A DNA stretch of 64,000 nucleotides from Lepidodermella squamata (lineage: Eukaryota > Animalia > Gastrotricha): positions 4,526,001 through 4,590,000 of the forward strand of contig JBLDXI010000024.1 in NCBI GenBank assembly GCA_047495785.1, in the 5' to 3' direction. The notes under the pieces were generated by a model. It was not told the DNA's origin. It searched no databases and was given only the letters and a program-made list of their open reading frames with translations. The translations under genes were made by a program, and so were the position numbers. Positions 12,401 to 63,307 of this stretch are shown piece after piece (position 1 is the first letter of the stretch; every line of letters starts with the position of its first letter).

Positions 12401-15400
12401 GATAAACCATGCTTGTATGAATAAATTTATTGTGTTAAAGACGTCTAAGCTGTATGGGAACTTCAATGAAATGGTTGAACAAATGCTGAAAATGGTCGAA
12501 ATCAACGTGAAATCCGGCAAAAACTTCACGTTCAACGGGAAATTTTTCTCAATCGCACTCAGCGTCGTTGATATGAGAACGTTGGCAAAGTTGAAGATCG
12601 AAACCATTCATGCCTCAGTGGAGTTTCCAAACACGACATCAGCAGTTGAATTCATCGATTCAAAAGCTTCGCAGGTTAGCCTTAAAGATTCTGACACTGT
12701 CACGGTTGCTCTTACGGCCTACATCGTCAATGTCCTCGATCCGGATCAACCATTCAACCTGCCGACAATTTCAGTCAAGGTTCTCTATCAGAAGAAAGAG
12801 CTAGTTCTAAAGAAAGGCTACGCCACTAAGATAACAGGCAAACCTTCTGCAACCCGAACAGCAAAGCTGAGTGGCCAAAAATCGGAGTCTCAGTGCGTCG
12901 TAAGTGAGATGAAATGCGATGTCACTGCGAATGCTGATGCCATAGGATCGCTGGCGCTTTTCCCAGTCTCTACGGGTTCAGGCGATTTCATTTTGACTTT
13001 TCCGACCATCAGATACAACTATACGGCTTATCTTTCCCTTAACAGTACCCCCACTGTCAGAAACTACACCTGGTCAATTTATGTAACTCAGAAAACTGTC
13101 AATTGCAGCGTTAATGCCACGCTTGGTGAACTCAAGTCAACCTACAATCCAGAAGTTGAATTGAGAGTGGTCATCCCTCAGACTGCTCTATTCGATTTCG
13201 CTGAATTGCAAGGACTGTCTTCAAGCGAAAATGTCACTTTCAAGCTACATGTTTACACTAAAAAAGACTTTTCAAGTTTCTCGACTATGGACGACCTGCC
13301 AGCAGATGCTTGCGAACTACAGCGATGCTACGGTTACCACCTCAAGATAGGATTCGCTAGGGCAAAATCAACAAGTTCAAGGAGAAGACGCGATGCATCG
13401 GGTTCAAGCTCTGATGACGATTTTGAGGTCGACCCCAGTTCGAATGAATCAGCCGTTGTCTTCAAATCTTCCTACTTTGGCGATTTTGGGGCCGACCTTG
13501 TGGTGTCACCAAATTCAATCGAATTTTCGGATATTTTCGCCAATTTCGCTACTCTCGTATCAGATAATGCTTACGTCCTCGCTTTTCAAGTTGCCGCTGT
13601 GGTCTTTTGCATCATTGGCATTATTGTTGTCAGCCAATTTGATAAGCTCGACATCAAGGAGTGGGCTTTCATGTCTCTGAAGAGCAACAAGCCGTACGAA
13701 GTGCATAAATATCTCGTTTCCGTCGATCATTTCGGCGTTAAAAGCTACCACCTGAAGCCTGTGGTCCTACTCCGAGCTTACGGTGATATCAGCGACACGA
13801 ACTGGCGCGTCCTTGAAGATTGCGAGCGAGATTCAAATTTCAACGGCAAGCGTCCAGCTAATTTCATGTTGACCACCACCATGCCGCTCGGCCACATCGA
13901 GGCAATCGAAATTAGACTACACAGCCGATACAGGGCAGCGCCAGGCAATAAGCCACTCGAGATGCAAATTGCCAAAGTGGTTATAGTGGATGTTGCGAAA
14001 AGCCAAAAATTCGTGTTCTTAACCAAGTCGCCTATGAAAAGTGGTGACATGGTGTCTAAGCAGCTAGCATCTGAGGATGACATTAAAGGCTTCCGATATC
14101 TGGTCAGCGCTCATTCTCGAGTTGGCGTTTTCAGCTCTCACCCTTGGCTATCGATCGCGAGGCGTCCTCTTCCCAGCAACTGGACCCGATGCGAACGGCT
14201 GGCTTGTGTAACCAGCGCTCTATTCATGGCAATGCTAGTCAATGCGATGTTCTACGGGAAGGAAAGTCAATCGCCCCGGGTTGGCATAAAAATCGGGGGA
14301 TACTTCCGCCTGTCCTGGTTCACAGTCTACACAAGCTTCATCGGATGCGTCATTGTCATCCCTCCAACTGCAATTATGGCCTTCATTTTCAAACGAATCA
14401 GACGTCGATCAGCTGAGAATAGCCAGTACACCACGATATTCAATGTTGCCCTAGGATTCCGACAAAGAAATCCTGACGACAAAGAAAAGAAGCCCTTCCA
14501 GCTTCCTTATTATTTCGCAATTGTCGCATGGTTTTGTAAGTCAATAAGTTTAACATAAAACAGCACTCCATTTTCTTCTTTTAAGTGGTTGCTGGGTGCA
14601 TCGGGGCATCATCTTTCTTCATCGTCATGTACAGTTTGATGTGGGGCAAGGAGAAGTCTCTGCAATGGCTTAGCGGGATGATCATGAGCGTTGTTCAAGA
14701 CATAATCATAATCCAAACAGTCAAGGTCGCGCTGTTGTCTCTATGCAGTTCAACTTTACTATCCCTTCCGGATGATGGTCTGGATATTGGCAAGATGGCA
14801 TTCTCCAAGAATAACTCTAGCAAGAAAACGGAGCTCTTCAAGCGCATGCGGAACATCATCGCAGGGATTTTCCACCACATCATTTACGTCGTGGCTTTTG
14901 CAATCGTAATCTCAGCAACGCAAAACACTCTAGCCTATCAGCAAGTTGGCGATTTGAAGCCACTCGTTGAGATGCCTACTGTACCTCAGATGGGCGTGAT
15001 TAATGACTACAGCCAGATTTATTCATGGTTGAACAACAATCTGTTGCCACAGTTTTTCACTGCGAACCAGCTGAAAAAGGGCCTGAACTTCAACCTGAAA
15101 AATATCTACCAAGTTCTAAATCACGACGTCGTGGTTCTTGGTCCAGTTCGCTTGCGACAGCAACGAGTTCAACCTTGTAAGCACGACCATGAAGAATGTT
15201 GTTGAGAAATTTTCATTTTCTTGCAGATTATTGTCCCTTGGAGACGTCGCCAATACCACTGATCAATCAGAAATTCACCAAACTGCTCATTTTGAACACG
15301 ACGAAGTGCCAAAATCCATATGTTGACCAACTTGGTATCGGCGAAACCACTGAACGGCGGCAATTTTCGAATTTATATTGGACCTTCAACGAAAGTATTA

Positions 15401-17090
15401 CAGCTTGGTTGGCTGAGAACGTCACGACTGAGCAGGCTCCGTGGATTTATCGAGAAGACAGCGGCATTCCTTACTCGGGATTTCAAGCTAGTTACTCGAG
15501 CGGTGGCTATTACGTAGACCTCCCAGTCACACTTAAAAAAGCGAGGGCGTTCGTCACTCAGCTCCAGTCGAGAAGATGGCTGGATAACGCAACTTCAGTC
15601 TTGTTTGTTGACATGGTCCTGTTCAATGCTCAGGTCAATTTGTTCATCGCTGTCAAAGTGGTGTTCGAAGCCTTAAGTGCTGGAGGTATGACCTATCACG
15701 CAAGAATGTACCCTCTGCAGCTCTATCAATACATCGGGGCTAGCTCGATCTTCGTTTTCGCGATTCAAGGCATCTGGATCTTGCTGGTCATCTCGCATCT
15801 GATTAAGATTTTCATTCAGATGAAAAAGCAAGGAATCACAAAGTTCCGAAAAGATGGATGGAATTTGCTGGAGCTGTGCCAGATATTGATATCCTTGGCC
15901 ATCGTTGGATTGTTTATAGCTCGAATTCTGGTAGTGATGAAGGCTGTAACCCGGCTTCAGACCGACCGAACTTCATTCGTGAACTTTGATCTTCTGGTCA
16001 ACTGGGAAGCTTTGATGGCTAACCTGTATGGAATCACATTTTTCATGACGATGCTGCTGTTTTTCCGCCATCTCACCTTCAACAAGTACTGGTGCATCTT
16101 CTTGGGAACGCTCTCCAAGGGCAAGGCGGATATATATTCATTCCTGTTCACTTTCGTCATCATCACACTGTTGTTCGCCACACTGGGTTATCTGAGCCTA
16201 AATACGACGTGTGACGAGTTTCAATCATTCACTGCTTCGATTATGACCCTTGTTCAGAATATCATCGGAGTGACTGGGTCCTTGATGTCGCTGAGCTTTA
16301 CATCTCGTTATATCATGTTGTTCTGCATGGCTTACTCAACTATTGTCATGTTTTTGGCTGTTCAGGTCTTCATGACCATCATTTCGGTCACTTACAGCCA
16401 GGTGGCTGAAAACGCTGAAGAAAACACCAACTGGGACTATGAACTATCCGGTTACATGGCTGAAGAGATAACGCGTACTTTCGGCAAAGCTGAGGAAAAG
16501 AAGAAAAGAGCTGCGCCCATTTTCAGGCCTATCGGAGAGAGAAATCTGGCGAGATGTAAGCTGTTTCCTAAATTTTTGGCTTTTTATATCATTTCGCTCT
16601 AGTGGAAATGTCGATTCACCGTTTGTCGCGCTATGTCGAGTCGCGCGTTGCAGATGATACTATCGAGCGAGTTGCGAAACGCGATCGATGCCTCGTGCAC
16701 TGGATGGACATGAAATTGCGTGGATTACGGCTTCGCAAATTTATGAACACCGTTATGCGTCAAAAGCCAAAAGCCACCAACGCACCTGCGAAGATTGAAG
16801 ATCCGAAGATGTTCAGGCATAGTGGCAACATTGCCAGTCAACGAGGTCATTTCACTGAAAAGGCCCATCCACGTCGAATGTCTGAGCCCTTCCCTCAAAA
16901 TTGGGTGTATCACATGCAGTCTGGTCCGGATGCTAAGCCATTCGTCAATCCTGGGAGAAAGTCGCTGTTTGGCATAGTTCTCCCGAGTAACAAGCAACGT
17001 GGCAGCTTGCCAGTTGGTTCTCTGCTTGGAACTTACGATCTCAAGAAGCAGGGTGGCGGAAATCGACTAAATCCCCACCCCGCGCACTAG
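3424..17090 (+). CDS. Polycystin-1-like receptor/channel subunit A (multi-exon): SP-EGFx~7-F5/8C-EGF-like-FReDx3-degenerate CCP-FReD-PAN-CCP-EGFx5-GAIN-like-TM1-PLAT-TM2-5-polycystin channel (6 TM)
   Basis: Leader exon [16 protein letters not shown] (3424-3472) and phase-compatible GT-AG exons. FReD motifs YC.M...[10 protein letters not shown]...FWLGN...GGWW; '[15 protein letters not shown]' before TM1; PLAT; '[15 protein letters not shown]'; TOP-domain motifs '[11 protein letters not shown]', '[10 protein letters not shown]', '[15 protein letters not shown]'; stop TAG at 17088-17090. Confidence 0.9.
4251..4942. mobile_element. Nested MITE-like inverted-repeat elements in a gene A intron
   Basis: Inner IR tcggtttttagaccaaaataaaatttga (4351) / tcaaattgtattttggtctaaaaaccga (~4599); outer degenerate IR atttctgggcccgctcatgtttcgtcc (~4258) / ggacgaaacactggcgagcccggaaat (~4909). 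Confidence 0.6.
7649..10900 (+). CDS. Gene A: four tandem fibrinogen C-terminal (FReD) domains (approx. 7649-8484, 8536-9212, 9269-10019, 10289-10900)
   Basis: Each repeat begins P.DC and contains GWTV(F/I)Q, (F/Y)(W/Y)(L/I/V)GN, AGD/VGD and GGWW motifs. Confidence 0.92.
12441..16600 (+). CDS. Gene A: GAIN-like stalk, TM1, PLAT, TM2-5 and polycystin cation-channel domain
   Basis: ORFs 12417-14558, 14585-15205 and 15196-16602, joined by ~50-nt introns; hydrophobic segment pattern and motifs typical of the PKD1 family. Confidence 0.92.
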
Positions 17091-17197
17091 AAGAACTGTT
17101 GTTGAGATTTCAATATCAATACGATCATGAAGCATGTCAATATCAATAGTGAGATATTCAAACATTTTCAGCCCCTATTATTCCATATTATAAAAAT

Positions 17198-17221
17198 CAT
17201 AGAGTCCTTCTGTTCTCTATG
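17198..17221. mobile_element. 24-bp remnant/footprint of the CATAGAG-terminal DNA transposon family
   Basis: catagag-tccttctgtt-ctctatg flanked by a perfect 8-bp direct repeat ataaaaat (17190-17197 and 17222-17229). Confidence 0.7.
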
Positions 17222-17355
17222 ATAAAAATACATTAGTTCCAATTTTCTTTCATTTTCATAAATCATTCGGAAACCAACTAATGCCTATATCTATCTATAT
17301 TGTCATGCCACTAAAAACAGAGCATTGAAAATGATTAGTTTGGAATTTTCTCGAT

Positions 17356-17455
17356 TACCGTAGTTACCGAAATACAAGCCTAGGCGGCACCTCTTTGTCG
17401 GCACTTTGATGTTCTTTGTAGTGCCGCCCAGGCTTGTATTTCGGTAACTACGGTA
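17356..17455. mobile_element. Short Tc1/mariner(pogo)-type MITE
   Basis: 35-bp IR taccgtagttaccgaaatacaagcctaggcggcac / gtgccgcccaggcttgtatttcggtaactacggta; TA-CCGTA termini. Confidence 0.75.
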
Positions 17456-17688
17456 CTTTGTATCTTTGTATCTTCGCATTGTATCTTATCATGCCGCGGG
17501 CATGACACTGAAGTGTTGAACTGCGGTACCTATGCCATATTACAATTTTATCATCATACATATTACGACGCGACGTCATGAGAATTACGTGTGAATTGTA
17601 ATTTTCTTTCATTTTTTTGATAATAAAATTGTGTGTTGCATTAAATGCAACTGTACTTCCGTAGTTTTCTTTCAATTCTGAGAAATTA

Positions 17689-17827
17689 AGGAATCCTTAA
17701 CGGTGTTGAGGGCAGAAACGAGATTTCGGCCCGCTGAAAATGCCCGAGGGCGTAGCGGAGCGAAGCCCGAGGGTATTTTCAAGGGCTGAAATCTAGTTTT
17801 TGCCCGAAAAACAAGTTTAGGATTCCT
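17689..17827. repeat. Imperfect palindromic (hairpin) repeat
   Basis: aggaatcct...gggcagaaacgagatttcggccc...gggctgaaatctagtttttgccc...aggattcct arranged as an imperfect inverted repeat. Confidence 0.55.
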
Positions 17828-19658
17828 GTTCCCACATTGTTGGTTATTTTCCCAAAAAAGCCCATTTTCCGCTCGAAATCTGGATAAAATGCACAACCAC
17901 TCACACACATGGCGTCTGTTTAAATTGAATTAAAAAATCAACCTTAAAAAATCGGTTAACAAATTCTTTTTGTTTCATTCCTCTTTCGAATCGAATTATT
18001 TTCGCACTAAATTTGTTTTGGTGAAAATCACGCTCGGCAACCGCGACTAATCCTCGGAAACGCAGTCGATTCTAACCAAATGCAGTCTACCAATGCAACA
18101 ATCAGCTCGTGAAAATCAGCTCGTGAAAACCGCAATTCTTAAGTAGCAGAAAATGGCCGAATTTCCTCTACGCAAATTCGACTAGGGCGATCAATCCGCC
18201 GGCGATGACGGCGATAACGGCTTTTTATTTGAAGACGTTGCTGATCACTGCAACGAAACACCGCGGAAATTGCGCTTCATACATTTGAAACGGTGGAACG
18301 GAATTCAAGGAAACGATTCGCCGACTATGCTGATCAACGGCTTTCGGAGGAATATCTCCGTGCGAAACGACTTCGCATTGGCTTTGTTTGGCCATGACCA
18401 GCTCGAGGAACCGGTTTGAATGACGTCAGTTCACGGTCGACGCCAGTTTTCAAGGAAATACTGCACTGTGCATGCCAAAACTCCAGAACTGACTTTTCGA
18501 TTTGTATAAGCTAATCTCTCACAATTTACGTGTTAAATAAAATTGGCTATTGTTAAAATGCTTTATTTGGTTCAAATTGTAGTTTTCTTGGTCTAATTTC
18601 TTGAAGGAGTCTGGTTTGTCCAGTAATTTACTGATTTGGAAATAAACTAAAATTAAAAATAAAAGATCCACCTTAAACGCGTGAGCGGGCGGAATCACCG
18701 GGCGGAAACACCGGGCGGAATCACATTTTCCATTGAAGCAAAAAATAACCAACCATGTGGGAACGATTCTGCTATCGTCCCGCGGTAAAAAAGTATCGAT
18801 ACGAATTCGATACAAATAACATGCGTGATTTCAAGGTGGACTTTTAATTTTATTCTTCGAATTGCCCAAACAACTAGTTTTGTTTTTTGTAAGGGGGAAA
18901 CGCTCCAAGAAATCATTATGCAGCCAGTTATTCCTCTTTGTTGCAGTTACTATTTAAAAATCCTGAACAATAGCACTCGCACCAGACTGCCAGCACGGTC
19001 AACTACGGCGCTGATAGTTTCAGACTACAAAATGCGATTTCACAGGTTCCTGAAACTAAATTCCTCATCGCTGGTTAAAACGGGTTCCCTGGAATCTCTG
19101 AACTATCAGATGCATACGCTGGAACCTGCCTGCCATAAACCACCTTGTCAACCTGGGCTCCATAAAGTTCCCCATAACATAGTATTTTAAGCTGATATTA
19201 GAGTTTGGTTTACAGCCCGATTTCATGGGTTCTAGAGAACTCCCAAGCCTTTCGCGGGTGGTCAACATCTTTATAGAAGACATCTTCGTAGGCAGATCGC
19301 TGCAATCAGTGTTGAGCGCGCATCTATCACTCGGCACTCGGGAATCAACCGATATACATTCAGCCTATGCCATTCAGCTGGCTATACATGCTGATTTTCA
19401 AAAAGTTGTATCCTAACTGTGCTTTTCAGTTTTTGACTTGTTTTCAGGTAGCCTACCTCTTATCGTTGGAGAATTCGAGAATTTGGGAAAATTACGGTTC
19501 TGATCTTTTGGAAAATGTTTTCAGCTGACCGTAGTACTGTGCTAGCGCTGAAATAGAAGTCGCCGTAGCCCTACTGTAGCGGCCCCGTAGTTGTGCTATT
19601 TGAGTGCTATTATTTTCGTATCCTGGGTAAACGCTCCAAGAAATCATTATGCTGCCAG

Positions 19659-20078
19659 CATAGAGAAAATAATGACCAGAGTAAGCAGTCAAGCTTAAAT
19701 TTTGATCTGCATTATTATGGAAGTGCGTTCTCAAAACGGATATCTCCGTCTTTTACCAAATTTTGCATGCCTATAGAACGCGAGCTGCTCTTTCTTGTGG
19801 TATAAGATTTGAGGTGGGCAATTGCTGCTCAGTCTTGATCTCATCAAAACAAGTAAAACCATAGTGAAAACGAGGTTTTTGTATTTTTTTGTAACAACGG
19901 TTCGGTTGTCCACCTCAAATCTTATACCACTGCTGAAAGAGCAGCTCGCGTTCTGTAGGCATGCATAATTTTGGTAAAAAAACGGAGATATCCGTTTTGA
20001 GAAAGTCAACTTTGAATAAAAATGAAGATTTAGAAATTTTAGCTTGAGTGCTTACTGTGGTCATTTTTTTTCTCTATG
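19659..20078. mobile_element. MITE, CATAGAG...CTCTATG termini, 8-bp TSD (P-element or hAT superfamily), copy 1
   Basis: Terminal IR catagagaaaataatgaccagagtaagca / tgcttactgtggtcatttttttctctatg, internal palindrome, TSD gctgccag on both sides; highly similar copy at 37988-38395. Confidence 0.9.
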
Positions 20079-20539
20079 GCTGCCAGTTATTCGAAATACT
20101 TTATTGTTTATTGCAGTTACTGGAATTGATAATTAAAAAGCGTAATTGCTCCCTTGCAAACGTCTATAGGAGGGCAGAACTAAAGAGGTGATTGCTAGCT
20201 TACATTGTTGATCGCTCACGTAAGGATCATCCGAATGCTGCTCCATCTCCGAACTGGGAGTAGCATGCGGGAGAGGCTGCTCCTCAGCTTTTTCGAGAAG
20301 ATCACTCGTTGACGCATTGTCTGTAGTATTACTTTCTTGGGCTTCAATTCATCCGCCAATTAGATTTCCGCACGTACAATAACTGCGCTATTTATTTACG
20401 AATCTTTTATATATCATTTAATAATAATGAAAGCAGGTGTACTTTATTACAGCAGCATTCGGCATCACTGTACTCTCATCATCAAAACCAAAAAAACGTT
20501 TAGACGGGTGCCGAATATACCCACCTCGACGATCCTAGT

Positions 20540-23500
20540 TCATAGTTGCATGGCTGTTTAGCGGTTTGTTAGTATCACCTTTTTTAGGTGACTCCAGGGA
20601 GCACCACGAGGAGGTCAACCGCTCAGCTCCCCGAAACAAAAATGAAGCGCAAAAATAAATCGTAAAGCTACCGCACAGTGGTGCATTTAACTCAGATGGC
20701 GTTGCGTTTGGCCTTTGGCCTGACTAACTTACCATTGAAAAAATTACCCTTCAAACTTACAAATGCATTTAGATGGTAACCATGGCTGGGTCCAACCGGT
20801 GTAATTCAGCACTCCCCAGGTTTTGTTAGCTTCAATGAGGCAAATTTTAATCCCGATATTCTGTATGAGAATCGGATGAGAACCTACCAACACATGCGAT
20901 AACAACCGAGCTGTCCCAAGATAACGGATCGAGAGTATCGATGTCGTAACATTCGTACGTGAAATTTGTAGCGAACTCATATATCGCATTAGCTGCTGCT
21001 GGGACTACGCCAGATAGTTTGACGTTCGGGAACATTGGAGGGCTGTCGCAATTCAAAGGAATGCAAGTACCAGGTGTTTTCGGCTCCCACTGCTGGCTAT
21101 CACCACAGTAGATAGTTTTCGATTTAACGTAACTATCCTCAGATTTGAACGTATAACCACGGACGCAAGTGTATTCCCAGGTTGTGTGAGCTCTGTTTTG
21201 AACATCGTAAGGCAGCGGATCGGGAATGGTGAAGTTATTCCATGAATAATCCACCACAGGCGGCATGGGACATCGCGTGGATTTGCAGATAATTTCTTCA
21301 CCAGTCCACTCACCGTAAGGCTTAGCGCAGATTCGAACAGGCAAGCCGGTTGATACCATCATAAAGTCATCGGCGCATTGATAGAATAGGGTCATAGTTC
21401 CGCCCGAAACTTCGACATTCGGCAGACGGACAGCGCTACTGTTCGATAAATCGGGGTATAACCCACACAACGTCCGACAATCCAGCCAATCGCCGACCCA
21501 TCTTTGAGTGTTGCTATCGCATGACAAAACTGTGGTATCACCCTGCCACTTCGAGTTAGTGAAACCAGGCAAGCACGTGTAATTCACTGAGATTTTCGAA
21601 CTGAAGTCTGATGTGATGATTTCCTGCGAAGTTCCTGTCATTGTTGGCGGAGGACCACATTGACCGGGGAAGTAGCCGCAATCATCCATCCTGAAGTATG
21701 TGTCAGTTCCTGCTTCAGCTGCGCCCTTGCCAGGGACACAAGTGTCATTTCGTATCGTGCAGTCCCCATTGCCAGAGCCCTTCAGAGTGAAAACGGCCGT
21801 TTTGCAAGTCCAGCTACCATATCCTGCGCAGTAGCTCGTGCAATCAGTAGCTGTAACTTGTTTGGTCAACGTGTAGAAAATGCCTTCTTCACATTTGAAA
21901 TTCGATATTTTCAAGAATCTGCCAGGCTTTGTTGGCCGGCGAATTTTCATGGAGGTCCAGGATAAATTCGGATTATAGCCATTTTTGAATGTATACCAAT
22001 ACATTTGGGCGCTGTCAGGTGTTTGCTTGCCATAAATTGCGTTCAGATTTGAAGTCTCGTCAGTCGAGCTTGATGAGGCGCACGGGGTGGGTTGATCGAA
22101 CCACCAGCCCCCGCATAAATCAAAGCTAAAGAAATTCCCATTCAACGCTTTTAAAGAGTCCCCGGCAGTCGAGCAATCCTGATACTTCGCAATGTTCAAG
22201 GTGTAAGCATCACTTTCGGTGTAAAACAGTTTGTAATAGGCGAAGGCGTACTCCTTATCTGACCGCATTTCAACGAGAAGTTCGAAATCAGCTGCCGCCG
22301 TCAGACCTTTGATAAGCTTGTTACCCATCCAGTAATTGTTGGATGCAGAACCGATCTGATAATCGAAACCAGCCAGGTCGAGCATGAAAGTCGTAGTTTC
22401 ATCAACTCGGCGCTGAATCTGGGTCCAGCCTCCACCGAATGTCTCCATATCGCAATAGGCTTTGAAGGTAACGGGCGATCCGGCTCCGTTGTCTGCAACC
22501 AGGTCGCTGAAGGTTTGCGATAGGTAACGACTGGTTATTGGGAGATTGGCCTGCTTCCATGTACAGTCGTTTGGTTCAGCGTAAGCTTTTAGAGTAACAC
22601 AAAATAGTTAAGATTCAATCATTAAAGAACAACAGAACTCTTACGTTTGCAAACAAGGTCACTTCCAGAATAGACCCCACTGCGATCGTTCAGCATTAGC
22701 CTTGTGCTATCCCCGGAAATTTGTCGATACGCATGATCACACTTGTGGCTGTATGTGGCTTTCTTCCAGTTACAAACTTGGGTCGTCGAAGCTTTGGGAC
22801 GATATAGGGCATCGGTGTATCTTGGTTTTATTGCGATCTGAGTAGCTTGGCATGACTTATCCAAACTGGTCAAGGTTGCCCAGTTGAGGCCATAACCCCA
22901 GGTGGTACTTCCCCAATTTGCGGCGTTGAGGTTCCCCAGAGTCCGACAACCTGGTTTGTTATCGGGCCACGTCCAGCTACCATCAATAGGCGGGTACCAC
23001 CAAGCGCCAAACCATTTAGTGTCTTGCCAGTTCATGCAAGCCTTCATCGACCCTCTATCAGGCGTCTGAAATGGCTGGTTGTTGTGTTCCCATTGGCCGA
23101 ATGAATCTCCAGCGGCTAGGTCACTCGATAACGACGAGTCGAAATTCTTCAGCCTAATCCGATAATCTTGCTTCTCGGGGTAGATTTTTACGTCATTATA
23201 ATAGGCGTATTTCCATTTTGAATCTATGGGACTTTTGCAAGCTACTAGCAGAGAGTAGGGCGAAGACATTGTAAGGCGACTGACGATGTCCAGCCCAAGC
23301 CAATGGTCCCCTTTCAGACCCTTCGTAGGGCTTGAGAATCCGTTTTTATAATCGTCCCAGCCCCGCCAGAAATCTGTCTCGCCGTCGAAGCGTCTCTGAA
23401 TTACAGTCCAACCTGTTCCTCGGTTAGGATAAGTTGTCGAAGAATAGTCGGTGTCATAATCGCAGTACGCTGTGAATTCAGTGCCATCAGACAGCGCTAA

Positions 23501-26500
23501 AGTAGCGATACCAGTGCTGCTAGCAGCTGTAACACAGTCTTTGTTACGCATTCGACGTTTTATCGCGATTTGGGTAGCTGCCATAGATACTTTGTCCTGT
23601 CCCAGCGTATACCAGTTTACGCCAACAAAGCTACGCGGATCTCCGAAAAAACCATTAAGGTCAGCGCTAGTCTTGCTGCAATCGGAAGACAGCCACCACG
23701 GGCCTCGATTATTCGTTACGATACAACTTTGACTTTGACCCTTATCGTAAGTCGAAAACGGCTGGTAATTAGATGCCCACATCGATTCTCCCGCCAATTC
23801 TTTTGGATCAGTTTTCGAGTCAAACCCCTCAACTGCGATTGCATAGCCGTCTTGCTCACTCGAAAGGTAAAAATCGCTGTAGTAAGCATAGTAGGTCTGA
23901 TTATCGGCAGGATTTACAAGTGATATCAACATTGAATACGCCTGTGATTTGGCCAGCTGGTAGACAGTCTCCAGGCCAAGCCAGAAGTCACCTTTCATCC
24001 CATCTGGGCCTGAAAATCCGTTTCTGTATTCATTGTAGCTTCTGTTGAACAGAACGTCGAAGTTCGATCTCCGCTGAATCACAATCCAACCCATGGCTGT
24101 CGATTTACCCGGCGAAGTGTAGTACGTCGTCATATCGCAGTAGACCCGGGTCGGCTTCATACCGTATGGGTAGATGTAGTAGATTCCATCATCAGCCACG
24201 CCCTGGCCTATCATATCCACGCAATCAATTGGCTTGGGCCCTCGCCTACGGATCATCATTGTGGCTGATTTTAGGCTTTCATACCGACCTTTCCACGGGG
24301 CCCAGTAGACACCGCCTTCCCAGGTGTTAACGTCATAGATACCATTCAGGTTGCTCTCGCAACATTTTGCATTGTCCCAAGCTCCATTATGCCACCACCA
24401 GCCCGTTGTTTTAGAGGCTGAACAGCTCGAAGCTGCTTGATCCTTCGTTCTAAATGGCTGCCAATTGTGAGGACTCAACCCATCGCCAGCCACTTCGATT
24501 GAAGTGTTCTCCGAATTGTAGCCATACACAATGAGTTCGTAACTGGTATTGCTGTGCAGCCAAAACGCGTCATATCTCGCAGTTCGCTTCTCGCCATTAT
24601 AGTCTTCTAAGACAACTGCCAATTCGTAAGGAATATGGGTGTATTCAATGTTGGTCATTGCCCAAATCCATTTGTTCCCCAAATAGTAAGCCCCGTTAGG
24701 CGAGCCAAATCCGCGAACGTATGTTGTGAAGTTCTGCTCGAAACTCACACTCGGGTCGTTGTAGCGACGTTGTATGACAGTCCAACCGCCTTCAAGCGCA
24801 TTCATCTCGCAGTAAGCTGTGAAACTATCCCCTGTAACTGTGTAGAGAGTGTACGCTGAACTTGCAGCAGTTGGGTTGGCTTCTCTTATATCCAAACAGT
24901 CGCTGGGATACGGAAACTGTGGTCGAAGTTCTGAAATGATAATTCTGAAATATTTGCTATGACTAAAGTAAGAATCTTACGTTGCATCAAGTAAGGTATG
25001 GGGGATCGTCTAATCATCATCTTTGTCGATTTCATGCTCTCCCAGAAACCGCGCCAAGTTGCCCACGTGATCATTGAACCCTCAGTTTTCGCGGAGGCCC
25101 TTCCGTTCAGGTTAGCCGAGGCGCAGTCTTTCGCTTCACTAGCCGGCTTGTACCACCAGCCTCCAAAAGCTCCTTTTGCACAGCCGAAGGAGGTCGAGGT
25201 TCCTGTATCATTGTCGTAAGTGTAGAATCGCTGATTGTTAGCTTTGGGCAAGAAAGAATCGGAAGGGTTTCCAGTGCAGTCGAAATTGGAAACTCGAAGC
25301 GTGAAGCCTCCAGATTCGGGTTCAATGTAAAAATCTTTGTAATAAGCGATTTGCTCCACGTTATCAACCGAGGTTAGAACGATGATCATATCGTAGCGGT
25401 TCATCGAAGTAGTAATGGTATTGATGTAGTTGTTTCCCAACCAATGACTGCTCCCTAGTTCACCGAATCCGGCTCGATAATCGGCCCAGTTTTGATAGAA
25501 TTCTTTTTGCCCGTCTATGCGCTGCTGGAAAACCGTCCAGCCCCCGCCGTAGCTATTCATATCACAGAATACAGAAATTGGAGCTTTGGCGCCTGGAGGG
25601 TAGATGTTGTAGGTTCCATCAGTTAGTGAGGGTTGGCGAAGAGCATGGTCCTCGCAATCCACTTGAAGCATCGACCATTGATCTGAGGTTCAGAACAAAT
25701 TTCATACCTGGACTGGTCAGAGTTACCGAACTTACCGCAATGTGGCCATGGGTTTTCTTGATAACCAACTCCGAAAGACGTCGTATAACCGACAGGGCAC
25801 AAGCATTGGCAGCCTTTCTCGTAGGTACAGCAAGTCGAGCATGGGGCATGTGGTGGGCAGCCAAAAACCTTGAAAAAAGATTCTGCCTGCTGGCCAATGA
25901 AAGAAACCGGCACGATTCTCAACGACTTTGTCCTTATGTTTGGGCAAAAGTTCGTTGTAGCGTAAAAGCTCAAACTGCGAGCTCCGGGAAAGATCTTCAC
26001 ACCGGACAACGGATTGGCTTGTTGGTTCAAGATCGGGTAGTAAAGCCGGTCGTTTGTCTTTTCAACCAGGAACCAAAGTGAATAAGACGTGATGAAGCGA
26101 TTGTTGTTCGATTGCGACCTTCCCTTGACCGATAGAGCTGAAATCGACGTCGACCTACCGAAATTGATCTGGAAAAATTGCCGCCCGTCGTTTAGAGTAT
26201 TCGGCGTATAAAAGATCGCAGCTTTCTCGCTGTTATCATAGTCGGCTTTATCAGTAGCCGTATTCGAAACTCCGATTGATCCGCCCCATTTTGTCAAAGC
26301 TTCAACGATCAGCTCATTGTTGCAAACTTTTTCAGCACACAAAATAGAAAGATTCTTGAATGCTTCTCGTGAATTTACCTGGCGGTTGAGCGTCAATATA
26401 GTAGTTCTTCCCAGGCGCAAGCGTAGCGCACGATGTACCTGTCCATCTTTGGAAAAATAGGTTAATTTCGAATTATTGGAGTAATTCCATGGATCCAAAG

Positions 26501-29500
26501 TTACCCCACTGGGCAGTTGCATGAGCAAATGCCAATCGAATCACAGCAATCGAAACCTTCACAAAAATTGAATTTCAGCCTTGCCTTAGTCTTAACTCAG
26601 TCTTACATCTTTTTCCTTTGGCTGAACAGCCGAAAATGTCGACGACCATCGTTATTTTGGTATTGTAGTCCACTGGTATGATTTTCATCGCTTTTAGCTT
26701 CATAGGAGGACAGAACGTCTGAAGCGAAGGCGCAGTAGCATTCATCGGGCCGATGAAAAGCCTCGGAGACTGGTCGATTGCGGTATAGTAGTTGAAGGTA
26801 TACTCGTAGCCTGTATGCGACCACTGGACGTAGTAGGTTTTAATCCACTCGTCCTTGTTCGTGGGATCATTGCTGCCCGCCATTACAAGACCCGTGACAA
26901 CCTTCAGAATTGCAAATTCGATTTTCCAGAAGGATCGACCATCTTCGCTGAATCTTGGTGACCAGCCAATAGTTATGGTGTCTTTATTGTCCTGTTTTAA
27001 GCCATTGGCATCCGCTGGTGATCCACTATCGGCAGAAGTCACGTGGGCAATATATGGGAAATAGCTAGCTCCATCGAACAACTCATGCCAACAGTCACAC
27101 AGAGAAGTAACTAGAATACTGAGCCTGAAATCAAGTAAACAGGAAGCAATTCTAGGTTACATTTAGCCGTGCTAGCGCATCCCTTAACATCCGCGCGAAG
27201 AAAAGGCTTCACAGCATAGGATAGAATCCATATTGTCAACTCAGCAGCTTGAAGCCTTGGGCATATCTCTTGAGAATTTCGCGCTGTTTCAGCCCCGTTT
27301 CCTGCGAAAATGATCGGGGCAAGTTTCGTCCAAAAAGCCGTTGATTTGTGGACATGGATCTGCAGCTCTTTCGAACTAGGAAGGGCGCGATAGCTGACGA
27401 TGTAGTTCAGTATGCGCCCAGAACCCTGAAGTCCCTCAGTTCCGATAGATCGGACGAAGATTGGGCCGTTTGAGAACTTGAACCTAACCCAGGCAGGATC
27501 AGCAGGGGTATTGGCGATCGATGGATCAGGGCACCATGCCAGGTTTGTCTGGGCCAGGTTGGACGGAGGGTATGAAACGGTGCCATCGGTGTATACAGAA
27601 CTGGCCTCATACCCACTGGCTGCAACATAAGAGCTTGAAATTACGCTTTCAGCACAAGCGGATGAATAAGTGCCAGCTGGAAAAATTCAAAATGTTGAGC
27701 GATGCGTCTTTTAATGCATTTTTAACAAACTTTTGCTGCATTTGATGGTGGGCGGCAGGGCTGCTTTCTCGCATAGGGCTATATCGCTATTCTGCATATC
27801 GATATCATTCATACCAATGCCGCAGTTCCACCAGAAATTGCCAACGATTTCATAGCTCCCGGCATAATCAGGTTGACCTTGTAGCCAATTGATATAGCCT
27901 GTATCGTTCATTCGAGTACCGTCGTCCATTTCCCAAAATTCGGGCTTCTGCGGAAAATCGTATATCTTCAAAAGTGACATTCCAACGTAGACTGGATCGC
28001 GCCAGTGCGTCAAGTATCTAGCGAATTTCGCCTCCATGGGATAGTTTGTCGCTACCAGGTACGAGTTAATGAATTCACATTGCTGCCGAGCACTGCGAAA
28101 CTTATGCCCACTGACAGTCCCAATTTTTTTGTAACACCTTCCGTTGAAAAAGTTCTGAATTATAGAAACATTTTACTGAAGTTCTTATTGAAAACATGCG
28201 TAAATACCCATCCAATGTCACACTCCAAGCAGGGCAAGGGCCGCTCGCAGATGAAAAACCCATTGATTGTGTTAGTGTCGACAGTAGTCCTGACTCTAAC
28301 TGAAGTACTGTTCCAGTAAAGATAGGCCCACTTATGGGTATTTTGAGGAAATCCGTCCGCCCAAAATGTAGAATCATTCGCTGCGCCAAACACTCCATTT
28401 GGGAAGGGCGCGTTGTTATCAAGATCCCAGTCTGATTCGCGAAAATAACATTTTCATTATAGATAACAAGAAGAATATTCCTACTTTCATCCGGATCGCC
28501 GACTTGAGAGATATCAGAAGAATCAGGCGTGCGACTCAATCGAAGACTGTTGTCTAAGCCAATCCAGATTGCAGAACCCGTCATAACACTGCTGCTCGAG
28601 CTGATAAATGCAACGAGCTGAGCGAACACTTTGGCATCGGTTATCGATACCAAGTTGAAAGTGTTGAAGGCGTCGTAACAATAACCTCGAGCGTCAAAGG
28701 GGTTAGATTTTGTGACGGAACTAATCAAAAAGATCTGTAGGATGCATATCAAAAACGCGAAAAAGATTTTACGTGACAAGTTTGTAGCAGCTTGAACCGA
28801 CAGATGTGAAGCCTTCTGGGCAAAGATCGGAGCAAGTTGCGGCTGAAGGCACCGTGCAGACAGGAATAGACTCGTCTTGACAATTACGGGTGTAGATGTA
28901 CATATTATTGTTGATTCGCGTGCAAGGCTGGTACCAATTGTTACCCCACGGCAGAGATGCGAGCCTGTTGTTGGGATAGCTTTCCCATGTAGATGGCTCA
29001 CCTTCCCATTTGTATGCCGCTGAGCCATAGAACAACAGTAATATAATTTACTCAATCCTCAATCGCTTACTTTTGTTTCTGAGGACTAAATCAATCCAGA
29101 AGCCCTCCTTTTGCAACTCGTTAATTGCTCGAGTCATTAGCTCGCTTTCGTAGCGTTGCATCAGCGTCAAAGGGCGAAGTCCGGCGGCCTGGCATTTGCT
29201 TACCATCTTAGGCCTATCACCTGTGTCGCTGAATAGCCAGACGCATTTGTTGGGCGCGACTCGATAGCCGGCGTTGAGTTTTGTAAGGCCAGAATCATCA
29301 GCTGGCGATTGGCACTCTGAAGAGTAGGAATGTGTTAACAAGTATTATACAGTGTGTCATTCGCTGCATACGCTTATTTTAGCGTAGCGAATTTTTCATG
29401 GTTACATATGATTTTGGGAGAGGCTTTAGTCGCTAAGTTTATGTGGTTTAGAGGATTTTGACGTAGCTATCAAAATGAGATAAGAGATAAAATTGATATT

Positions 29501-32500
29501 TCATGAAAGAACCTAGTGCGCGTTTATACATCGTAATAATATCTTTTCCCTCCCTCCAAAGTCGCAATTACGGAACATATATGAGATTGAGCAATGGAAA
29601 ATTGGTGAATATGAGCTTGAAAACATCATTTTCGCCTCTCGCATATGTTCGAAAATGCCACAAATGTGAAATGCACGTAGATCAGCGGTTCCCAAACTTT
29701 TTGACTCGTAGTAGTGTCCTATGAGAATGGCTCGTAGAACACCTTGCTAAATTGAATGAAATTTGGTTGGGAATGGATACAATTTTTTGAGCTACACATT
29801 GATTAGTCTTAACATTGATTTTGGATGGCAACTTATAGCTCGAAAGAGAAGAAATCTCAGGTGAAACTAAGCGCGCGAGCGAAGCTAGGAAATTTTGATA
29901 CTGAAAAACCACGTATAACTTCTTAAAAATGAGAAAATGGCTCGGGGTTTTTCCATTCATATTCCATTCCTTTTTTTTGAGCCACGTCAAAATCCTTTTA
30001 ATCACATAAACACAGCGACATCCAAAACCATGTTCAACAGTGGAAAAATGTATTATTGCATTGTATGTACATTGTATGTATATTGCAAACAATTTAGGAA
30101 ACACTGTACAAGTTATAAGCTTCTTACCCAGGCAAGACGTAGGCGTATTTGCATACTCGCAGATGAAACGAAATTTCGTAGAGGTGTCGAATGACGTGAT
30201 ATTTCCAGCAGGTCCACTTGTTACTGTTCTTGAGCTGTTGCAAAACGGAACTAGCAATTGATCGGCTTTGGAGAGAAGAGCGGCGTAACAGTCTGGCGTA
30301 GTAGGCCAAGTTGCGTCTCCGATAATCGATTCTGCGGAAAACATTAAAGAAGTTCGTTGTTCATTGTAGTTCGGCAATTAACTCACTGCTGAGCGCTTGG
30401 GTAGCATTGCTGAGCGAGTTTGGCCAAGACCAAATGCCGTAGGAATCTGAAATGCGGTCCATCAAATCGGCTGATTTTTTTGCTTACTTAAGGTCTTACT
30501 TAAAGATAATGAAGTCCAGTAATAAGGATCGACAGCTTTTTCATGGTTGACCAAGGCTTGCAGCTTATTTGACGTATCTGGGACAGCCAGATAGGCCCCT
30601 CTGCTGTAGCATTTCCAACTTGCATCAGCCCATGTTGCCCTAAAAAAGGATTATAAAATAAAGCGACTGCATAATGCCTTGACTTACGTTTGAGTGGAAA
30701 AGAAAACACAAGTGTCAGTTTTAGTCGAAGGGTCTGAATACCGCACAAAAGGACATTTACAGCATCCATCCTAAGAATTTTCCTTTTATCAGAGTACTGA
30801 TTCGTACGGAAAACTCACATCGACACATTCAGGAGGCGCTTGAGTTGTTACGGTAAGTGTCGCGCCGTTACCGTACCAACCATATTTCTGGCACAGAACC
30901 CTAGCAGTGAAGCCGGAGGACTTAGAAATCCACATACTCGATGTTTGATCCAGTGCGCCCGAATATAGCTCGTCGGCAGCGGGTCTGAAGGTGTAAGCAT
31001 ACATTGTTGAATCCAAGCTATCATATGGGTTTATATCCAAGGCGTCACTTGCGATGAAGTTGCTGGAACTCATCCACTTCCACACCGAATTGTCTGCGTA
31101 CAACCCAACGAAATACGGGTTGCCAGTGGACAATATATTGTTGTGATTGGCAGCAACGCGTAGCCACATCAGAGCACTCTCAGTGTTAGCTACAAACAGA
31201 TCTTTCCACCAATCATGGTGGCACCAATCTCGGCCGTTGCCTAGACTCGTTTCGCCCCAGCCTGGATTCTGGTAGCACATTTGACCCCACTTGTACCACC
31301 CGGCATCAGTTGGGCAGAACCAGCAGGCTGAAGAGACCTCGCAGATGTATCGAGCTGATTTGTTGAACATGTTATCACCGACTGGCAGGTACCATTGAGA
31401 GCGAGACTTGCTGTAAGATAAGTGGGCAATGTAGTTATTTGAACCATCGCTATACACTGTCGGGCGGGTTTGCCAGATGAGGTAACTCCATGGCGAGGGA
31501 GAGGGTGAAAATTGATTCGTGGAGATGTCGGTATTCACTATAGGACCAGTGCCATCCGACCAGTACCATCTACCATCGGGATCGCCACTATAACCATTGT
31601 ATCCGAAATTGGAATTTGGTTTCCTTCGAGATCGGCGGGCCCAGTCTTGCAAGCCAATGAAGTAGAATCTGTCAGTGTTCAATTTCTCGACACCTCCATT
31701 CATAATGAACTTGAATTCATCCAATGAGTTGAAATTCACAAAGGAAGCCCCGTTAGCAAGCTTGAATATAACAAACTTGGGATACACTAACGTAAAATGA
31801 GTTTACAACTTACGCAAGTTTTCAAGGCAATCATATAGGTTGTTGAATGGCTGTAACAGACAAGTTTTCTTAATTTAGATTTCAACATTAAAAGAAGTCT
31901 TACGGGGCCACCCAGTAACAAGCATCATAGCACTCGGAATATACATAGCCAGGCGGGCAAGTAGCTATATAAATAGAAGTCAAAGCGTGGGATCAAGCAG
32001 TTTTACGGACTTACGGGTGGTTGGGCACTTTGAGAATGAGCAGGTCTGTTGGTAACCATAAATTCCCGACATCTGACAAACCGCCTTGGCTGTATCCGTA
32101 CTTGAAGCCGCTGTCCATTGCGAGGCTGGTTGGTCACTAATTCCTGAGAAGCTATTCGATTTGCTTATAGAAGTGATCATATAGGCGTATGGAGCTGGTC
32201 CCGAAGATGAAGCCAAGTCGAAGGAATCTGAACCTGATACACCAGTCCCATCCGACCATTCGTAACCCCCTCCGCTAGCTGTTTCGAGCCCTATCCAGAT
32301 CTTAGTTCCGCTGGACATCAAACCAGCTTGAGCGGTTACCATTCGAACGTAGAGCGTGGTCATTTCAGTTTTTGGGTACCACAAATCAGCGTTAGCCTCT
32401 AGGTTGGTGCAAATAGCTTTCTTAGAGTCATAAGTGTCTTCGTCATCATCTGTCAGCCCCATGAAGCAATAAGTGCCGAATTTGAACCAACCAGTCGGAC

Positions 32501-37135: not shown

Positions 37136-37238
37136 GAAGCTTCTATTATACTTGGATTTAACGCTATCAAACGGCCACTAGAAGTACTTTTGTGAATTAG
37201 AGCAAAAGGACGGCAGAATTAATATGTCAAATGCAGAT

Positions 37239-44534: not shown

Positions 44535-44628
44535 TATAGATATCAGCTCGACGCTTTCTAACGGCAAAACACGATCAACTGAAAGCGATGATAAGCAACT
44601 TCCGGCCAAAATGAAAGTGTCGACTGTA

Positions 44629-61800: not shown

Positions 61801-63307
61801 ATGTGTCATCTGATGACGCGCCGTGGAGTTATCGCAAGGATTCCAACGGAGTTCTCTACTCGGGCTGGTCTGCTGACTATAAAACCGGTGGCTACTACGT
61901 CGACCTACCTTCAAAAATGTGGAGGGCCAAGCAACTGGTAGCCAATCTGAAAGCTGGGAGATGGCTTGACAACTCAACTTCAGTCCTATTCGTCGATTTT
62001 ATCTTGTACAACTCACAAATCAATTTGTTTTTGACTGTGAAAGTCGTATTTGAGGCCCTGTCAGCCGGTGGGATGAACTACCACACGAGAGTTTACCCGC
62101 TACAACTGTACCAATACTCTGGGGCTAGTAGCATTTTGATCTTCATAATTCAAGGCATTTGGATAATACTGCTGATATCTGTGACTATCAAAGCTGTTTA
62201 TTCAATGAAAAAACATGGGCCTAAACAGCATTTGAAGGATGGTTGGAATGTATTGGAACTTGTCTCGATCGCCATAGCTTACGGCATTGTCGGTCTCTTC
62301 GTTGCGAGGATTTCTAGCATTATCAAAATGATCAATAGAATGCAGACTGATCGATCATCCCACACTAATCTCGACCTACTGGTCAATTGGGACGAAATAA
62401 TGGCTAACCTCTACGGCTTGACCTTCTTCATGACCATGATGCTGTTCTTCCGAAATCTGAAATTCAACAAATATTGGTGCATGTTTTTGGCTACTTTATC
62501 GAGGGGTAGGAATGACCTGCTTTCATTTATCATTGTGTTCACCATCATCACAATGATGTTCTCTGGCTTGGGCTATTTGACTCTTGGGGCAACTCAAACC
62601 GAGTTCAGATCGGTAACAGCTTCAATAATGACCCTACTGCAAAATGTGATCGGTGTAACTGGGACTTTGATCTCCCTCGGCACAAAGTCTCGGTTGATCA
62701 TGATCTACTGCATCGCCTACTCTTCGATCGTAATGTTTTTAGCTGTCCAGATTTTCATGACCATCATAACTGTGACGTATGATCATGTTACTGACGACGT
62801 TGAGCATAACACTAACTGGGACAAAGAGGTGTCGGAATACATGGTCAAGGAATTTAAGAAGTTGATAACCAGAAAGCAGTCTAAGGAAGATATAGGAATC
62901 GACCTGTTAGTTAATGACAGCTCCTTTCCCGAACGTAAGTATAACATTGATGTCTCAAAATTTTTTAACTAACCCTTACATTTGCAGTTGATGAAGCATT
63001 GAATCGGCTTTTGCAACGTGTCGACGCCGTTGCGAAGAATGCTCCACTCATCGAGGAGGATAAACGAGTTGCGTGTAACATCCGCTGGGCCGAGCAGTAT
63101 CTCAGCCTATCGCGCGCAAAATCTGCGAAGCCCGATGTCCGACAACCCTCGGCAACATTCACTATAACGTCAGACGAAGTTGGAGCCCGGCGTCCTAAAA
63201 AGATTCCAAAACGAAGACCTTCAGTTGAACCCATCTTCACGGCAAGACTACCCGGTGGCTTCGCCTATTATGAGTTTCTCAGCCGGTTCAGTGAGCACAA
63301 CGTTTAA
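52879..63307 (+). CDS. Polycystin-1-like receptor/channel subunit B (multi-exon): SP-EGF-F5/8C-EGF-like-FReDx3-degenerate CCP-FReD-PAN-CCPx3-EGF-Thr-rich stalk-GAIN-like-TM1-PLAT-TM2-5-polycystin channel
   Basis: Leader MGIEILGFSLIFLFTSRAVEG (52879-52942); phase-compatible exons. Membrane half is collinear with and strongly similar to gene A ([45 protein letters not shown]). Stop 63305-63307; AATAAA at ~63535. Confidence 0.9.

Follow-up and report, generated by a model that had tools for sequence, protein, structure and literature searches.

The stretch of DNA analysed here, 64 kb of contig JBLDXI010000024.1 from the gastrotrich Lepidodermella squamata (hereafter the window; all coordinates are positions within this whole stretch), is characterized by genes with large exons and very short introns. 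Genes A and B are encoded on the plus strand and code for receptors that combine a lectin-type antenna with a polycystin-type channel. Gene C, the subject of this analysis, is a minus-strand gene that is oriented tail to tail with A and located within 35 kb of both receptor genes. Its sequence supports the view that it is an intact, conserved giant lectin-type gene and a channel-less relative of the A/B ectodomain. Furthermore, its sense strand carries, behind the last coding exon, a conserved, predicted HDV-like ribozyme (HDV, hepatitis delta virus), the assignment of which is based on sequence and covariation.

In the 3′ part of gene C, five exons can be joined through four GT-AG introns of 50, 53, 58 and 59 nt to give 1,781 codons without a single stop (Table 1). 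The encoded protein comprises a discoidin domain, an EGF-like piece, five fibrinogen-related domains (FReDs), a PAN-like domain and four Sushi domains. These modules are collinear with the outer parts of A and B. The Pfam cut-off for Fibrinogen_C is exceeded, with E values of 8e-51, 1e-96 (three stretches) and 1e-14 for the five FReDs; the discoidin domain, with 23.3 bits for F5_F8_type_C (E 7.5e-05), stays below its cut-off of 28.2 bits. FReD 3 and FReD 4 (22645-24208) form a sister pair (support 94/96) that is not found in A or B, and according to the tree they are a tandem duplicate specific to C. A short Cys-rich spacer follows FReD 4; the same spacer also precedes the last FReD in two related genes, L001 and L002, which are introduced below.

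The initial annotation had placed the end of gene C at the stop codon at 20847. This stop, however, is intronic. It falls into an intron within Sushi 4, and a further exon of 69 nt follows. The junction reads ATC GCA TGT GTT G/GTAGGT...TTGAAG/CT AAC AAA ACC TGG, and the spliced Sushi 4 peptide matches CVGNQTWG..WLP..C in both L001 and L002. The Sushi 4 intron is not present in the two relatives and was thus either gained in this lineage or lost in theirs.

Table 1. Features of the gene C locus and of the comparator genes A and B.
Feature	Position	Strand	Remarks
Predicted HDV-like self-cleaving ribozyme, 73 nt	20560..20632	- (gene C sense)	Expected cut between 20633 and 20632
5′ splice site GTAAGT	20755..20760	-	Directly 3′ of the last Sushi 4 Cys; phase 1
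Last recognizable coding exon, 69 nt	20761..20829	-	Finishes Sushi 4; phase 1 end
Intron within Sushi 4, 58 nt	20830..20887	-	GT-AG; in-frame stop 20847 inside
Exon: FReD 5, PAN/Apple-like, Sushi 1-3, most of Sushi 4	20888..22585	-	Pfam Fibrinogen_C (1e-14), Sushi
Exon: FReD 2, 3, 4 and short Cys-rich spacer	22645..24930	-	Pfam Fibrinogen_C, three stretches, E 1e-96
Exon: FReD 1	24981..25682	-	Pfam Fibrinogen_C E 8e-51; clusters with A_F1 and B_F1 in FReD tree
Exon: third discoidin (F5/8 type C-like), EGF-like Cys-rich piece	25736..26326	-	Pfam, tblastn, splice sites
Candidate poly(A) signal AATAAA	20443..20448	-	112 nt 3′ of ribozyme
Gene C upstream part, ~10 kb, approximate model	26575..37135	-	Open segments, Pfam Lectin_C, F5_F8_type_C
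Two more discoidin domains, upstream part	27686-27114, 27081-26575	-	Pfam F5_F8_type_C
About eight C-type-lectin-like exons, upstream part	34.4-27.7 kb	-	Pfam Lectin_C
EGF repeats, upstream part	36.2-34.5 kb	-	A5/A6 EGF matches at 35.1-36.2 kb
Candidate leader exon	near 37135	-	Minus-strand open segment; candidate leader of 20 residues
Spacer between convergent C and A	17091..20442	.	Hairpin MITE-like repeats (17356-17455, 19728-20003, others)
Gene A (comparator)	5231..17090	+	Discoidin, 4 FReD, PAN-like, 1 Sushi, EGFs, stalk with RRRR
Gene A membrane part	within 5231..17090	+	TM/PLAT region, polycystin domain, PKD channel
Gene B (comparator)	53128..63307	+	Discoidin, 4 FReD, PAN-like, 3 Sushi, 1 EGF
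Gene B, after EGF	within 53128..63307	+	Thr-rich stalk with RRRR, then channel block

When the open reading frames (ORFs) of A and B were compared with the window by tblastn, the C ORFs matched the receptor ectodomain module by module: B4 with 38.7% identity over 437 amino acids (285 bits), B3 with 42.7% over 248, A3 with 40.2%, A5 with 35.6% over 348 and B1 with 32.5% over 206. This similarity, which is far above chance, had initially been noticed from short peptides, and these are indeed found, for C in the minus-strand ORFs 25623-26528, 24886-25671 and 20847-22448, and for B in the ORFs 53128-53781, 53784-54455 and 56579-57955. The accompanying view that C is closest to B holds for the architecture, as Sushi 2-3 occur in B and not in A, and for the discoidin, PAN-like and Sushi 1 domains, in which B is nearer to C than A is. 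It does not hold overall. Over the block common to all three proteins (last FReD, PAN-like domain, Sushi 1), the identities amount to 39% for A-B, 38% for A-C and 40% for B-C. A hidden Markov model made from the C FReDs recovers five such domains in C itself and four in each of the two receptors. In the FReD tree the positions are orthologous (support 95/95 for the second and 100/98 for the last FReD), and the relationships within them are mixed: C pairs with A at the first (86/77) and last (88/75) positions and with B at the second (88/82). By these measures, C is shown to be about as far from A and from B as A is from B.

It had also been suggested that C resembles the fragment that furin would release from the receptors. 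Of this proposal, the channel-less relative of the ectodomain remains; the upstream part, the duplicated FReD, the fourth Sushi domain and the missing stalk do not conform to it. Compared with the receptors' ectodomains, C has additional EGF, C-lectin, discoidin, FReD and Sushi modules, whereas the EGF/mucin stalk, which in A and B comes before the RRRR site, is missing. Sushi 4 is specific to C, because B runs from Sushi 3 and A from Sushi 1 directly into EGF domains.

As for the membrane part, the stalk/PLAT/channel ORFs of A and B share 50-58% identity, and both stalks are Ser/Thr-rich with an RRRR site. A word-based search matched A7, the stalk/transmembrane (TM) ORF of gene A, to a Lingula PKD1L2-like protein bearing PLAT and PKD_channel domains. 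The same type of search in annotated proteins gave zero matches for the A channel ORF, and the Atlas cluster nearest to the channel is commonest in Rotifera. In line with the initial annotation, no channel block is present between C and A: by tblastn, the stalk/PLAT/channel ORFs match only each other, and no third copy exists anywhere in the 64-kb window. Neither a TM segment nor a PLAT, polycystin or PKD channel domain was detected in the gene C ORFs with Pfam. The spacer from the AATAAA behind C to the stop of A measures about 3.3 kb and does contain hairpin elements resembling miniature inverted-repeat transposable elements (MITEs), as had been described. Its ORFs yielded zero Pfam domains, and tblastn revealed no coding relic of stalk, PLAT or channel within it.

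A search with the last large exon of C against 1.8 billion representatives gave two strong matches only, P0001 and P0002. These are ORFs on L001 and L002, scaffolds of one ENA metagenome, of which L003 is a third fragment; a word-based search with P0002 returned only P0001 and P0002 themselves. Both L001 and L002 match gene C (C1) best, with 372 and 436 bits, compared with 253 and 257 bits for B4 and 193 and 216 bits for A5, and the match includes Sushi 4. A tree of the last FReD places L001-L003 together with C_F5, apart from A_F4 and B_F4 (support 78/70). The proteins of the genes compared are about 40-44% identical. In both relatives Sushi 4 ends at a phase-1 donor (CKG/GTAAGA in L001, CRG/GTGGGT in L002), and the stalk or channel ORFs of A and B have zero matches on the two scaffolds. 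These C-type genes end alike next to different genes. On L001, the neighbor is a convergent ankyrin-repeat gene whose end lies about 260 nt past the donor; on L002, it is a separate gene for 435 amino acids, which has its own start and begins about 400 nt past the donor. Between L002 and L003, the ratio of nonsynonymous to synonymous substitutions (dN/dS) is 0.08 over 303 codons. To judge from this comparison, the channel-less ending is old, inherited and under selection.

Beyond the donor, the tails of the window, L001 and L002 are unalignable save for one block of about 42 nt, which is unique in the window. In the window, a 73-nt HDV-like ribozyme is predicted on the sense strand of gene C. 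Known HDV-like ribozymes cut at the first nucleotide of P1, have a P1 of 6-7 bp and a P2 of about 7 bp, and share a short J1/2, conserved P3, L3 and P1.1 elements, a P4 that varies and a J4/2 that supplies the catalytic C (PMC4908430; PMC3774820). In the window, P1 is GGGGAGC/GCTCCCT (7 bp, with a G1.U wobble at its base) and J1/2 is TG; P2, AGCGGTT/AACCGCT, is followed by a G, then by P3 (ACC/GGT) with L3 TCCTCGT; finally, there are a GG for P1.1, P4 TCACC/GGTGA and J4/2 ACTAAC, TACTAACA. The L001 copy has P1 GGGAAGC/GCTTCCT, P2 GGCAACT/AGTTGCC, J4/2 ACCAAC and a weak P4, and the L002 copy P2 TGCAACTG/CAGTTGCA, P4 ACCGATTT/AAATCGGT and J4/2 ACTAAC. A fourth copy came from scanning JGI metagenomes with the 23-nt core, which revealed the same element in an AT-rich, non-coding contig, L004 (= L006). 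It has P2 GAGCTG/CAGCTC and J4/2 ACTAAC, and all helices except P4 are present.

When the four copies are compared, it becomes clear which parts are fixed. The window, L001 and L002 possess the complete set of HDV-family helices, and P1 measures 7 bp with a G.U at its base in each copy. The string ACC-TCC(T/A)CGT-GGT, followed by the 3′ strand of P1 and GG, is invariant, whereas P2 (6-8 bp) differs in sequence in each copy and yet remains fully complementary. P4 spans 5-8 bp in the window and L002. All four copies show the nested double pseudoknot in which P1 is crossed by P2 with a short J1/2, and they have the C of J4/2 directly before the 3′ strand of P2 together with a variable or absent P4, as expected for the HDV family. 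The catalytic C would be position 20572 of the window. In the alignment fold, the single varying pair is a compensated one, pair 4 of P1, where the window has G-C and the relatives have A-U; the covariation is drawn from four ribozyme sequences, two of which come from one sample. Since the lengths of J1/2 differ, MAFFT misplaces the P1 5′ strands of the four ribozymes, and the helix pairs were therefore counted by script and not from the alignment. In a flank-shuffle control, the observed P1 plus P2 was reached in 245, 14, 4 and 1033 of 20,000 trials for the four copies, respectively. Pseudoknot-free folding selected P1 together with P4 for two of the copies; for the remaining two it selected P2, accompanied by P3 and P4 in L002 only. 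For a 131-nt stretch, the top two of 4,227 Rfam families were HDV_ribozyme and drz-agam-1 (23.8 and 18.2 bits; both scores are below the respective gathering scores, see below). The drz-agam-1 consensus GACCUCCuCGuGGU...ACuaAc corresponds to the window nearly letter for letter. The core of the antigenomic HDV ribozyme is likewise built of ACC-UCCUCGC-GGU and C-UAA.

The position of the ribozyme is kept as well. It starts 128, 148 and 138 nt past the Sushi 4 donor in the window, L001 and L002, respectively, which fits vertical inheritance under selection. A descriptor scan of the window gave no second ribozyme, and none was found behind A or B. An AG follows 3-6 nt past the last helix of the ribozyme (6 nt in the window), and in L002 it coincides with the last base of the ribozyme. 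If this AG is used, the candidate terminal introns measure 207, 226 and 215 nt in the window, L001 and L002, compared with 50-59 nt for the other introns. In L002, an AATAAA lies about 70 nt past the ribozyme.

Some further observations concern the ribozyme sequence itself. In the window (20566-20572) and in L002, J4/2 reads UACUAAC, which is the textbook branch-point consensus, and a CAG follows 9-15 nt later. One and the same string might thus be used by the ribozyme core and by a 3′ splice site. The minimal ribozyme of L004 (1821-1876, corresponding to 951-1006 of L006) comprises 56 nt, with the same core and without P4; the contig is apparently non-coding, has a GC content of 32-33% and is present in two different metagenome collections. 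Another match to the 23-nt pattern, L005, has no P1 partner and no P2. It was excluded as probably a chance match or a decayed copy. Lastly, contigs from X1, a run of genomic DNA and the one public run in which this DNA was found, break inside the ribozyme (20615-20634), and the bin 20433-20631 is covered at about fourfold baseline depth. It seems that at least the core of the ribozyme is present in multiple copies in this genome.

We consider it probable that the gene C product is secreted, the basis being that no convincing TM or glycosylphosphatidylinositol (GPI) exon lies downstream of the last Sushi domain. A hydropathy scan of the minus-strand frames from 17.0 to 20.8 kb gave only short AT-rich chance stretches, and no open frame in this region joins a phase-1 acceptor to a hydrophobic run of at least 19 residues. 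Listing all phase-1 acceptors yielded short tails in the window and no conserved tail. The candidates in the window are one tail of 16 amino acids, a hydrophilic one of 30 amino acids, or CKFEG followed by a stop if the donor is not used.

Altogether, the reading we favor, with somewhat better than even confidence and on sequence grounds, is that gene C is a working, channel-less giant multi-lectin gene with a secreted product, which would have a leader peptide and lack a membrane anchor, and with a predicted ribozyme that cuts past the coding region. The ribozyme would be transcribed within the gene C pre-mRNA and would cut the nascent transcript just past the coding region. If it belongs to a terminal intron, cleavage would race splicing in a CPEB3-like manner; if it belongs to the 3′ untranslated region (UTR), cleavage would remove the poly(A) tail. 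Either way, the ribozyme would determine or restrict how much mature lectin mRNA there is, and it would end transcription before the closely packed neighbor, thus preventing read-through. The protein itself may be a soluble carbohydrate- or pattern-binding protein, assembled from a module pool that is also used for the antennae of the receptors. As such, it might be a competitor of A and B for ligands, or it might present ligands to these receptors. It is also conceivable, although we would not expect it, that the giant secreted lectin gene family of this lineage has recruited the HDV-like ribozyme as a fixed part of its 3′ end. Cleavage by a recruited ribozyme could terminate transcription in a compact genome, gate expression through a race with splicing or polyadenylation, or act as a switch that decides whether the product is secreted or acquires a small anchor exon by splicing; more than one of these may apply. 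If true, a conserved role of an HDV-like ribozyme in forming the 3′ ends of cellular mRNAs, extending over a whole gene family, would be seen here for the first time.

Several points speak against the interpretation we favor. With a ribozyme ahead of the poly(A) signal, loss of the mRNA would be expected, except where the ribozyme acts slowly, is regulated or is removed by splicing. Both Rfam scores remain below the gathering scores (23.8 versus 50 bits and 18.2 versus 37 bits), where a gathering score is a database threshold and not a structural feature, and where the HDV-family models are blind to the P2 and P1.1 pseudoknots. At the 4-kb scale, the HDV-family models were not listed in the Rfam scan. 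In L002, the AG at the end of the ribozyme opens a phase-compatible exon, VIFVSNFFFFTFILCVCIVMKMTNKVH followed by a stop (L002:2347-2430), which resembles a TM anchor: a TM-like helix with a short basic tail, located in T-rich sequence and followed by the AATAAA. The same type of ribozyme also occurs outside lectin genes, in L004/L006, and retroelements are the usual home of HDV-like ribozymes (PMC2950038; PMC3774820).

The alternatives that arise from these and other points concern either the protein or the RNA. Gene C could be a dead or recently truncated receptor, that is, a pseudogene or a gene that has lost its channel by inversion, as considered in the initial annotation. Its tail-to-tail arrangement with A and the repeat-rich spacer with its indel polymorphism would be compatible with such an origin. 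Yet the absence of stops over 1,781 codons and the correct placement of the introns, the fact that two genes of a relative, with different, unrelated neighbors, end without a channel in the same way, the strong purifying selection on the C-type genes of the relative, the lack of any channel relic in the spacer, and the complete ectodomain that gene A possesses on its own are all contrary to it. As the channel-less ending is old and selected, both the pseudogene and the recent inversion are excluded for practical purposes, and we assign this scenario only the slightest probability. A membrane-anchored product, in which the donor at 20760 is spliced to a small TM or GPI exon, comparable to the single-pass proteins within the REJ family of sea urchins, is improbable as well, if less drastically so. 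The conserved consensus 5′ splice site directly after Sushi 4 does imply another exon, and the L002 exon past the ribozyme provides 19 hydrophobic residues and then KMTNKVH before its stop. The corresponding exon, however, encodes no more than SMQL before the stop in the window and DKKYISLFILFEI before the stop in L001. Moreover, the T-rich sequence past the ribozyme yields runs of Phe, Ile and Leu by chance, and the frames between 17.0 and 20.8 kb offer no phase-1 acceptor with a hydrophobic run of the required length. With respect to the TM/GPI question raised at the outset, a soluble product is thus the more probable one, and an anchor-like exon is possible in L002.

As far as the RNA is concerned, a conserved block of 25 nt might be taken for a short terminal coding exon (..DL[LH]VVLPG.. 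or ..LTS[ST]WC[SF]LE..) rather than an RNA element, for it is preceded by a pyrimidine tract and an AG in all three genes, and phase-1 acceptors open readable tails in the window as well as A[SN]ATDL[HL]VVLPGT.. in L001 and L002. But owing to a 1-nt indel, the frame opened by the aligned AG in the window is not the one that it opens in the relatives, and the conservation at the DNA level is far above that of the neighboring Sushi exon. The block also recurs in the non-coding context of L004/L006, and the changes outside it compensate to keep P1, P2 and P4, which a peptide cannot explain. The terminal-exon reading was dropped in view of the conflicting frames, of the copies in non-coding sequence and of the helices preserved by compensation, and we rate it as very improbable. 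A more serious contender, albeit still an unlikely one, is a ribozyme that does not serve gene C at all and is instead the head of a small retroelement co-transcribed with its host, in the manner of R2 and other non-long-terminal-repeat (non-LTR) elements. Such an element would reside in lectin genes with high expression, in their 3′ region, and its ribozyme would detach the 5′ end of the element from the transcript of the host. HDV-like ribozymes are indeed mostly tied to non-LTR retrotransposons, from whose host co-transcripts they excise the element (PMC3774820; PMC2950038). The near-identical minimal ribozyme in the non-lectin, AT-rich context of L004/L006 points in the same direction, and the increased depth around the ribozyme and the contigs breaking in it suggest a multi-copy core. 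On the other hand, no reverse transcriptase or other Pfam domain lies 3′ of the ribozyme in the window, and the post-ribozyme sequences of the window, L001 and L002 are unalignable. In L001 the gap between the ribozyme and the stop of the convergent gene measures only 42 nt, so that there is no room for a body. The distance between donor and ribozyme is kept across proteins of only about 40-44% identity. The retroelement explanation is weakened by the lack of a body or domain, by the narrow gap in L001 and by the kept position, and we thus continue to regard a working lectin gene with its own ribozyme as the likelier situation.

The surroundings of gene C deserve mention too. In the region 17050-23000, introns and spacer are covered alike in the X1 run, as expected of genomic DNA, and the depth in the spacer rises up to about 90 times the baseline. 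Some X1 contigs lack 98, 1111 or 1173 nt of the spacer. The element at 17356-17455 is a 100-nt palindromic MITE-like sequence with 35-nt arms that are 97% complementary, and one X1 contig skips exactly 98 nt here (17355 to 17454, depth 67). This MITE-like insertion appears to be both present and absent within the sequenced sample. The larger junctions span 1,111 nt (17650-18762, with 31 other letters between; depth 34) and 1,173 nt (18933-20107, with 5 letters between; depth 86). The spacer seems to be structurally polymorphic, or close copies of it exist elsewhere. A second hairpin (19728-20003) of 276 nt is nearly perfect, contains three nested inverted-repeat pairs and reaches a depth of about 6,700; Rfam lists it below threshold as 'MIR2646'. 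The only Rfam matches on the 4-kb stretch were sub-threshold 'miRNA' families of this kind, which correspond to MITE hairpins. A related hairpin copy is located at about 38062-38335, 5′ of gene C, and both share the translated string ..LMRSRLSSNCPPQIL..KEQLAFYRHAKFGK.RRYPF. Also 5′ of gene C, leader-like hydrophobic starts are found at 36682-37177 and 44208-44633 (MMNSGILLSILICAHVTNVIG is one of them). Behind each of them come a Gly-rich repeat, of the Gly-Met type at 37 kb and poly-Gly at 44 kb, and an EGF-like exon.

Among known systems, soluble decoy-type receptor paralogs such as secreted Frizzled-related proteins and osteoprotegerin come to mind. Like C, they are separate genes that contain the ligand-binding modules of a receptor without its signalling part. 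C, however, is not a trimmed copy, since it is larger than the receptor ectodomains and equidistant from A and B. Polycystin-1, the PKD1-like proteins and sea urchin REJ proteins have the PLAT-type, polycystin-domain and PKD-channel parts in common with A and B, for which the discoidin/FReD/PAN/Sushi antenna is unusual within the family. C shares the module order of the ectodomain, but because the membrane part (TM, PLAT, polycystin domain and channel) is absent, it is not a member of this family. Secreted FReD lectins with PAN and Sushi domains, whose Atlas clusters are commonest in molluscs, and invertebrate FREP/ficolin-like proteins show the same order FReD, PAN, Sushi as C, although the Atlas scores for the last large exon of C are 0.89 at most and serve as leads only. 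Compared with these lectins, C is about ten times longer and possesses five FReDs plus discoidin and C-lectin arrays. Like them, C is probably secreted and likely serves in carbohydrate or pattern recognition.

The ribozyme shares its nested double pseudoknot with drz-Agam-1 (RF01787), the HDV ribozyme (RF00094) and the R2 ribozymes, and in the case of drz-Agam-1 the core elements ACC-UCCUCGU-GGU and ACUAAC match as well. Unlike the HDV-like ribozymes of retroelements, the one predicted here is not at a recognizable element head; it is located behind a lectin gene and conserved between species. It thus belongs to a known kind of ribozyme, whereas its conserved place in a gene, past the last coding exon, is new. 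To our knowledge, hardly any cellular role has been described for HDV-like ribozymes that are not part of retroelements, the CPEB3 intron aside. The mammalian CPEB3 ribozyme is likewise HDV-like and conserved within a protein-coding gene. However, it resides in a long internal intron, whereas the candidate intron of gene C is terminal, about 207 nt long, and has its acceptor 6 nt past the ribozyme. Cleavage by the CPEB3 ribozyme competes with splicing and lowers expression, and blocking it raises CPEB3 expression (PMC10919898). The other parallel is provided by the discontinuous hammerheads in the 3′ UTRs of rodent Clec2 C-type lectin genes, which cut reporter expression by about 80% (PMC2950038). 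In Clec2, as predicted for gene C, a self-cleaving ribozyme is kept in the 3′ part of a lectin-family mRNA, but as the Clec2 ribozymes are hammerheads and not HDV-like, and occur in other lectin genes of another animal group, the likeness is convergence at most.

With two lectin-antenna polycystin-type channels and a channel-less relative on one 64-kb stretch, the locus represents a natural set of receptors and probably soluble homolog. It allows one to ask what the antennae bind, and whether secreted lectins and sensory channels share one shuffled module pool. A ribozyme long held at one spot behind lectin genes, in parallel to the hammerheads of the rodent Clec2 3′ UTRs, likewise makes the function of genic ribozymes directly testable.

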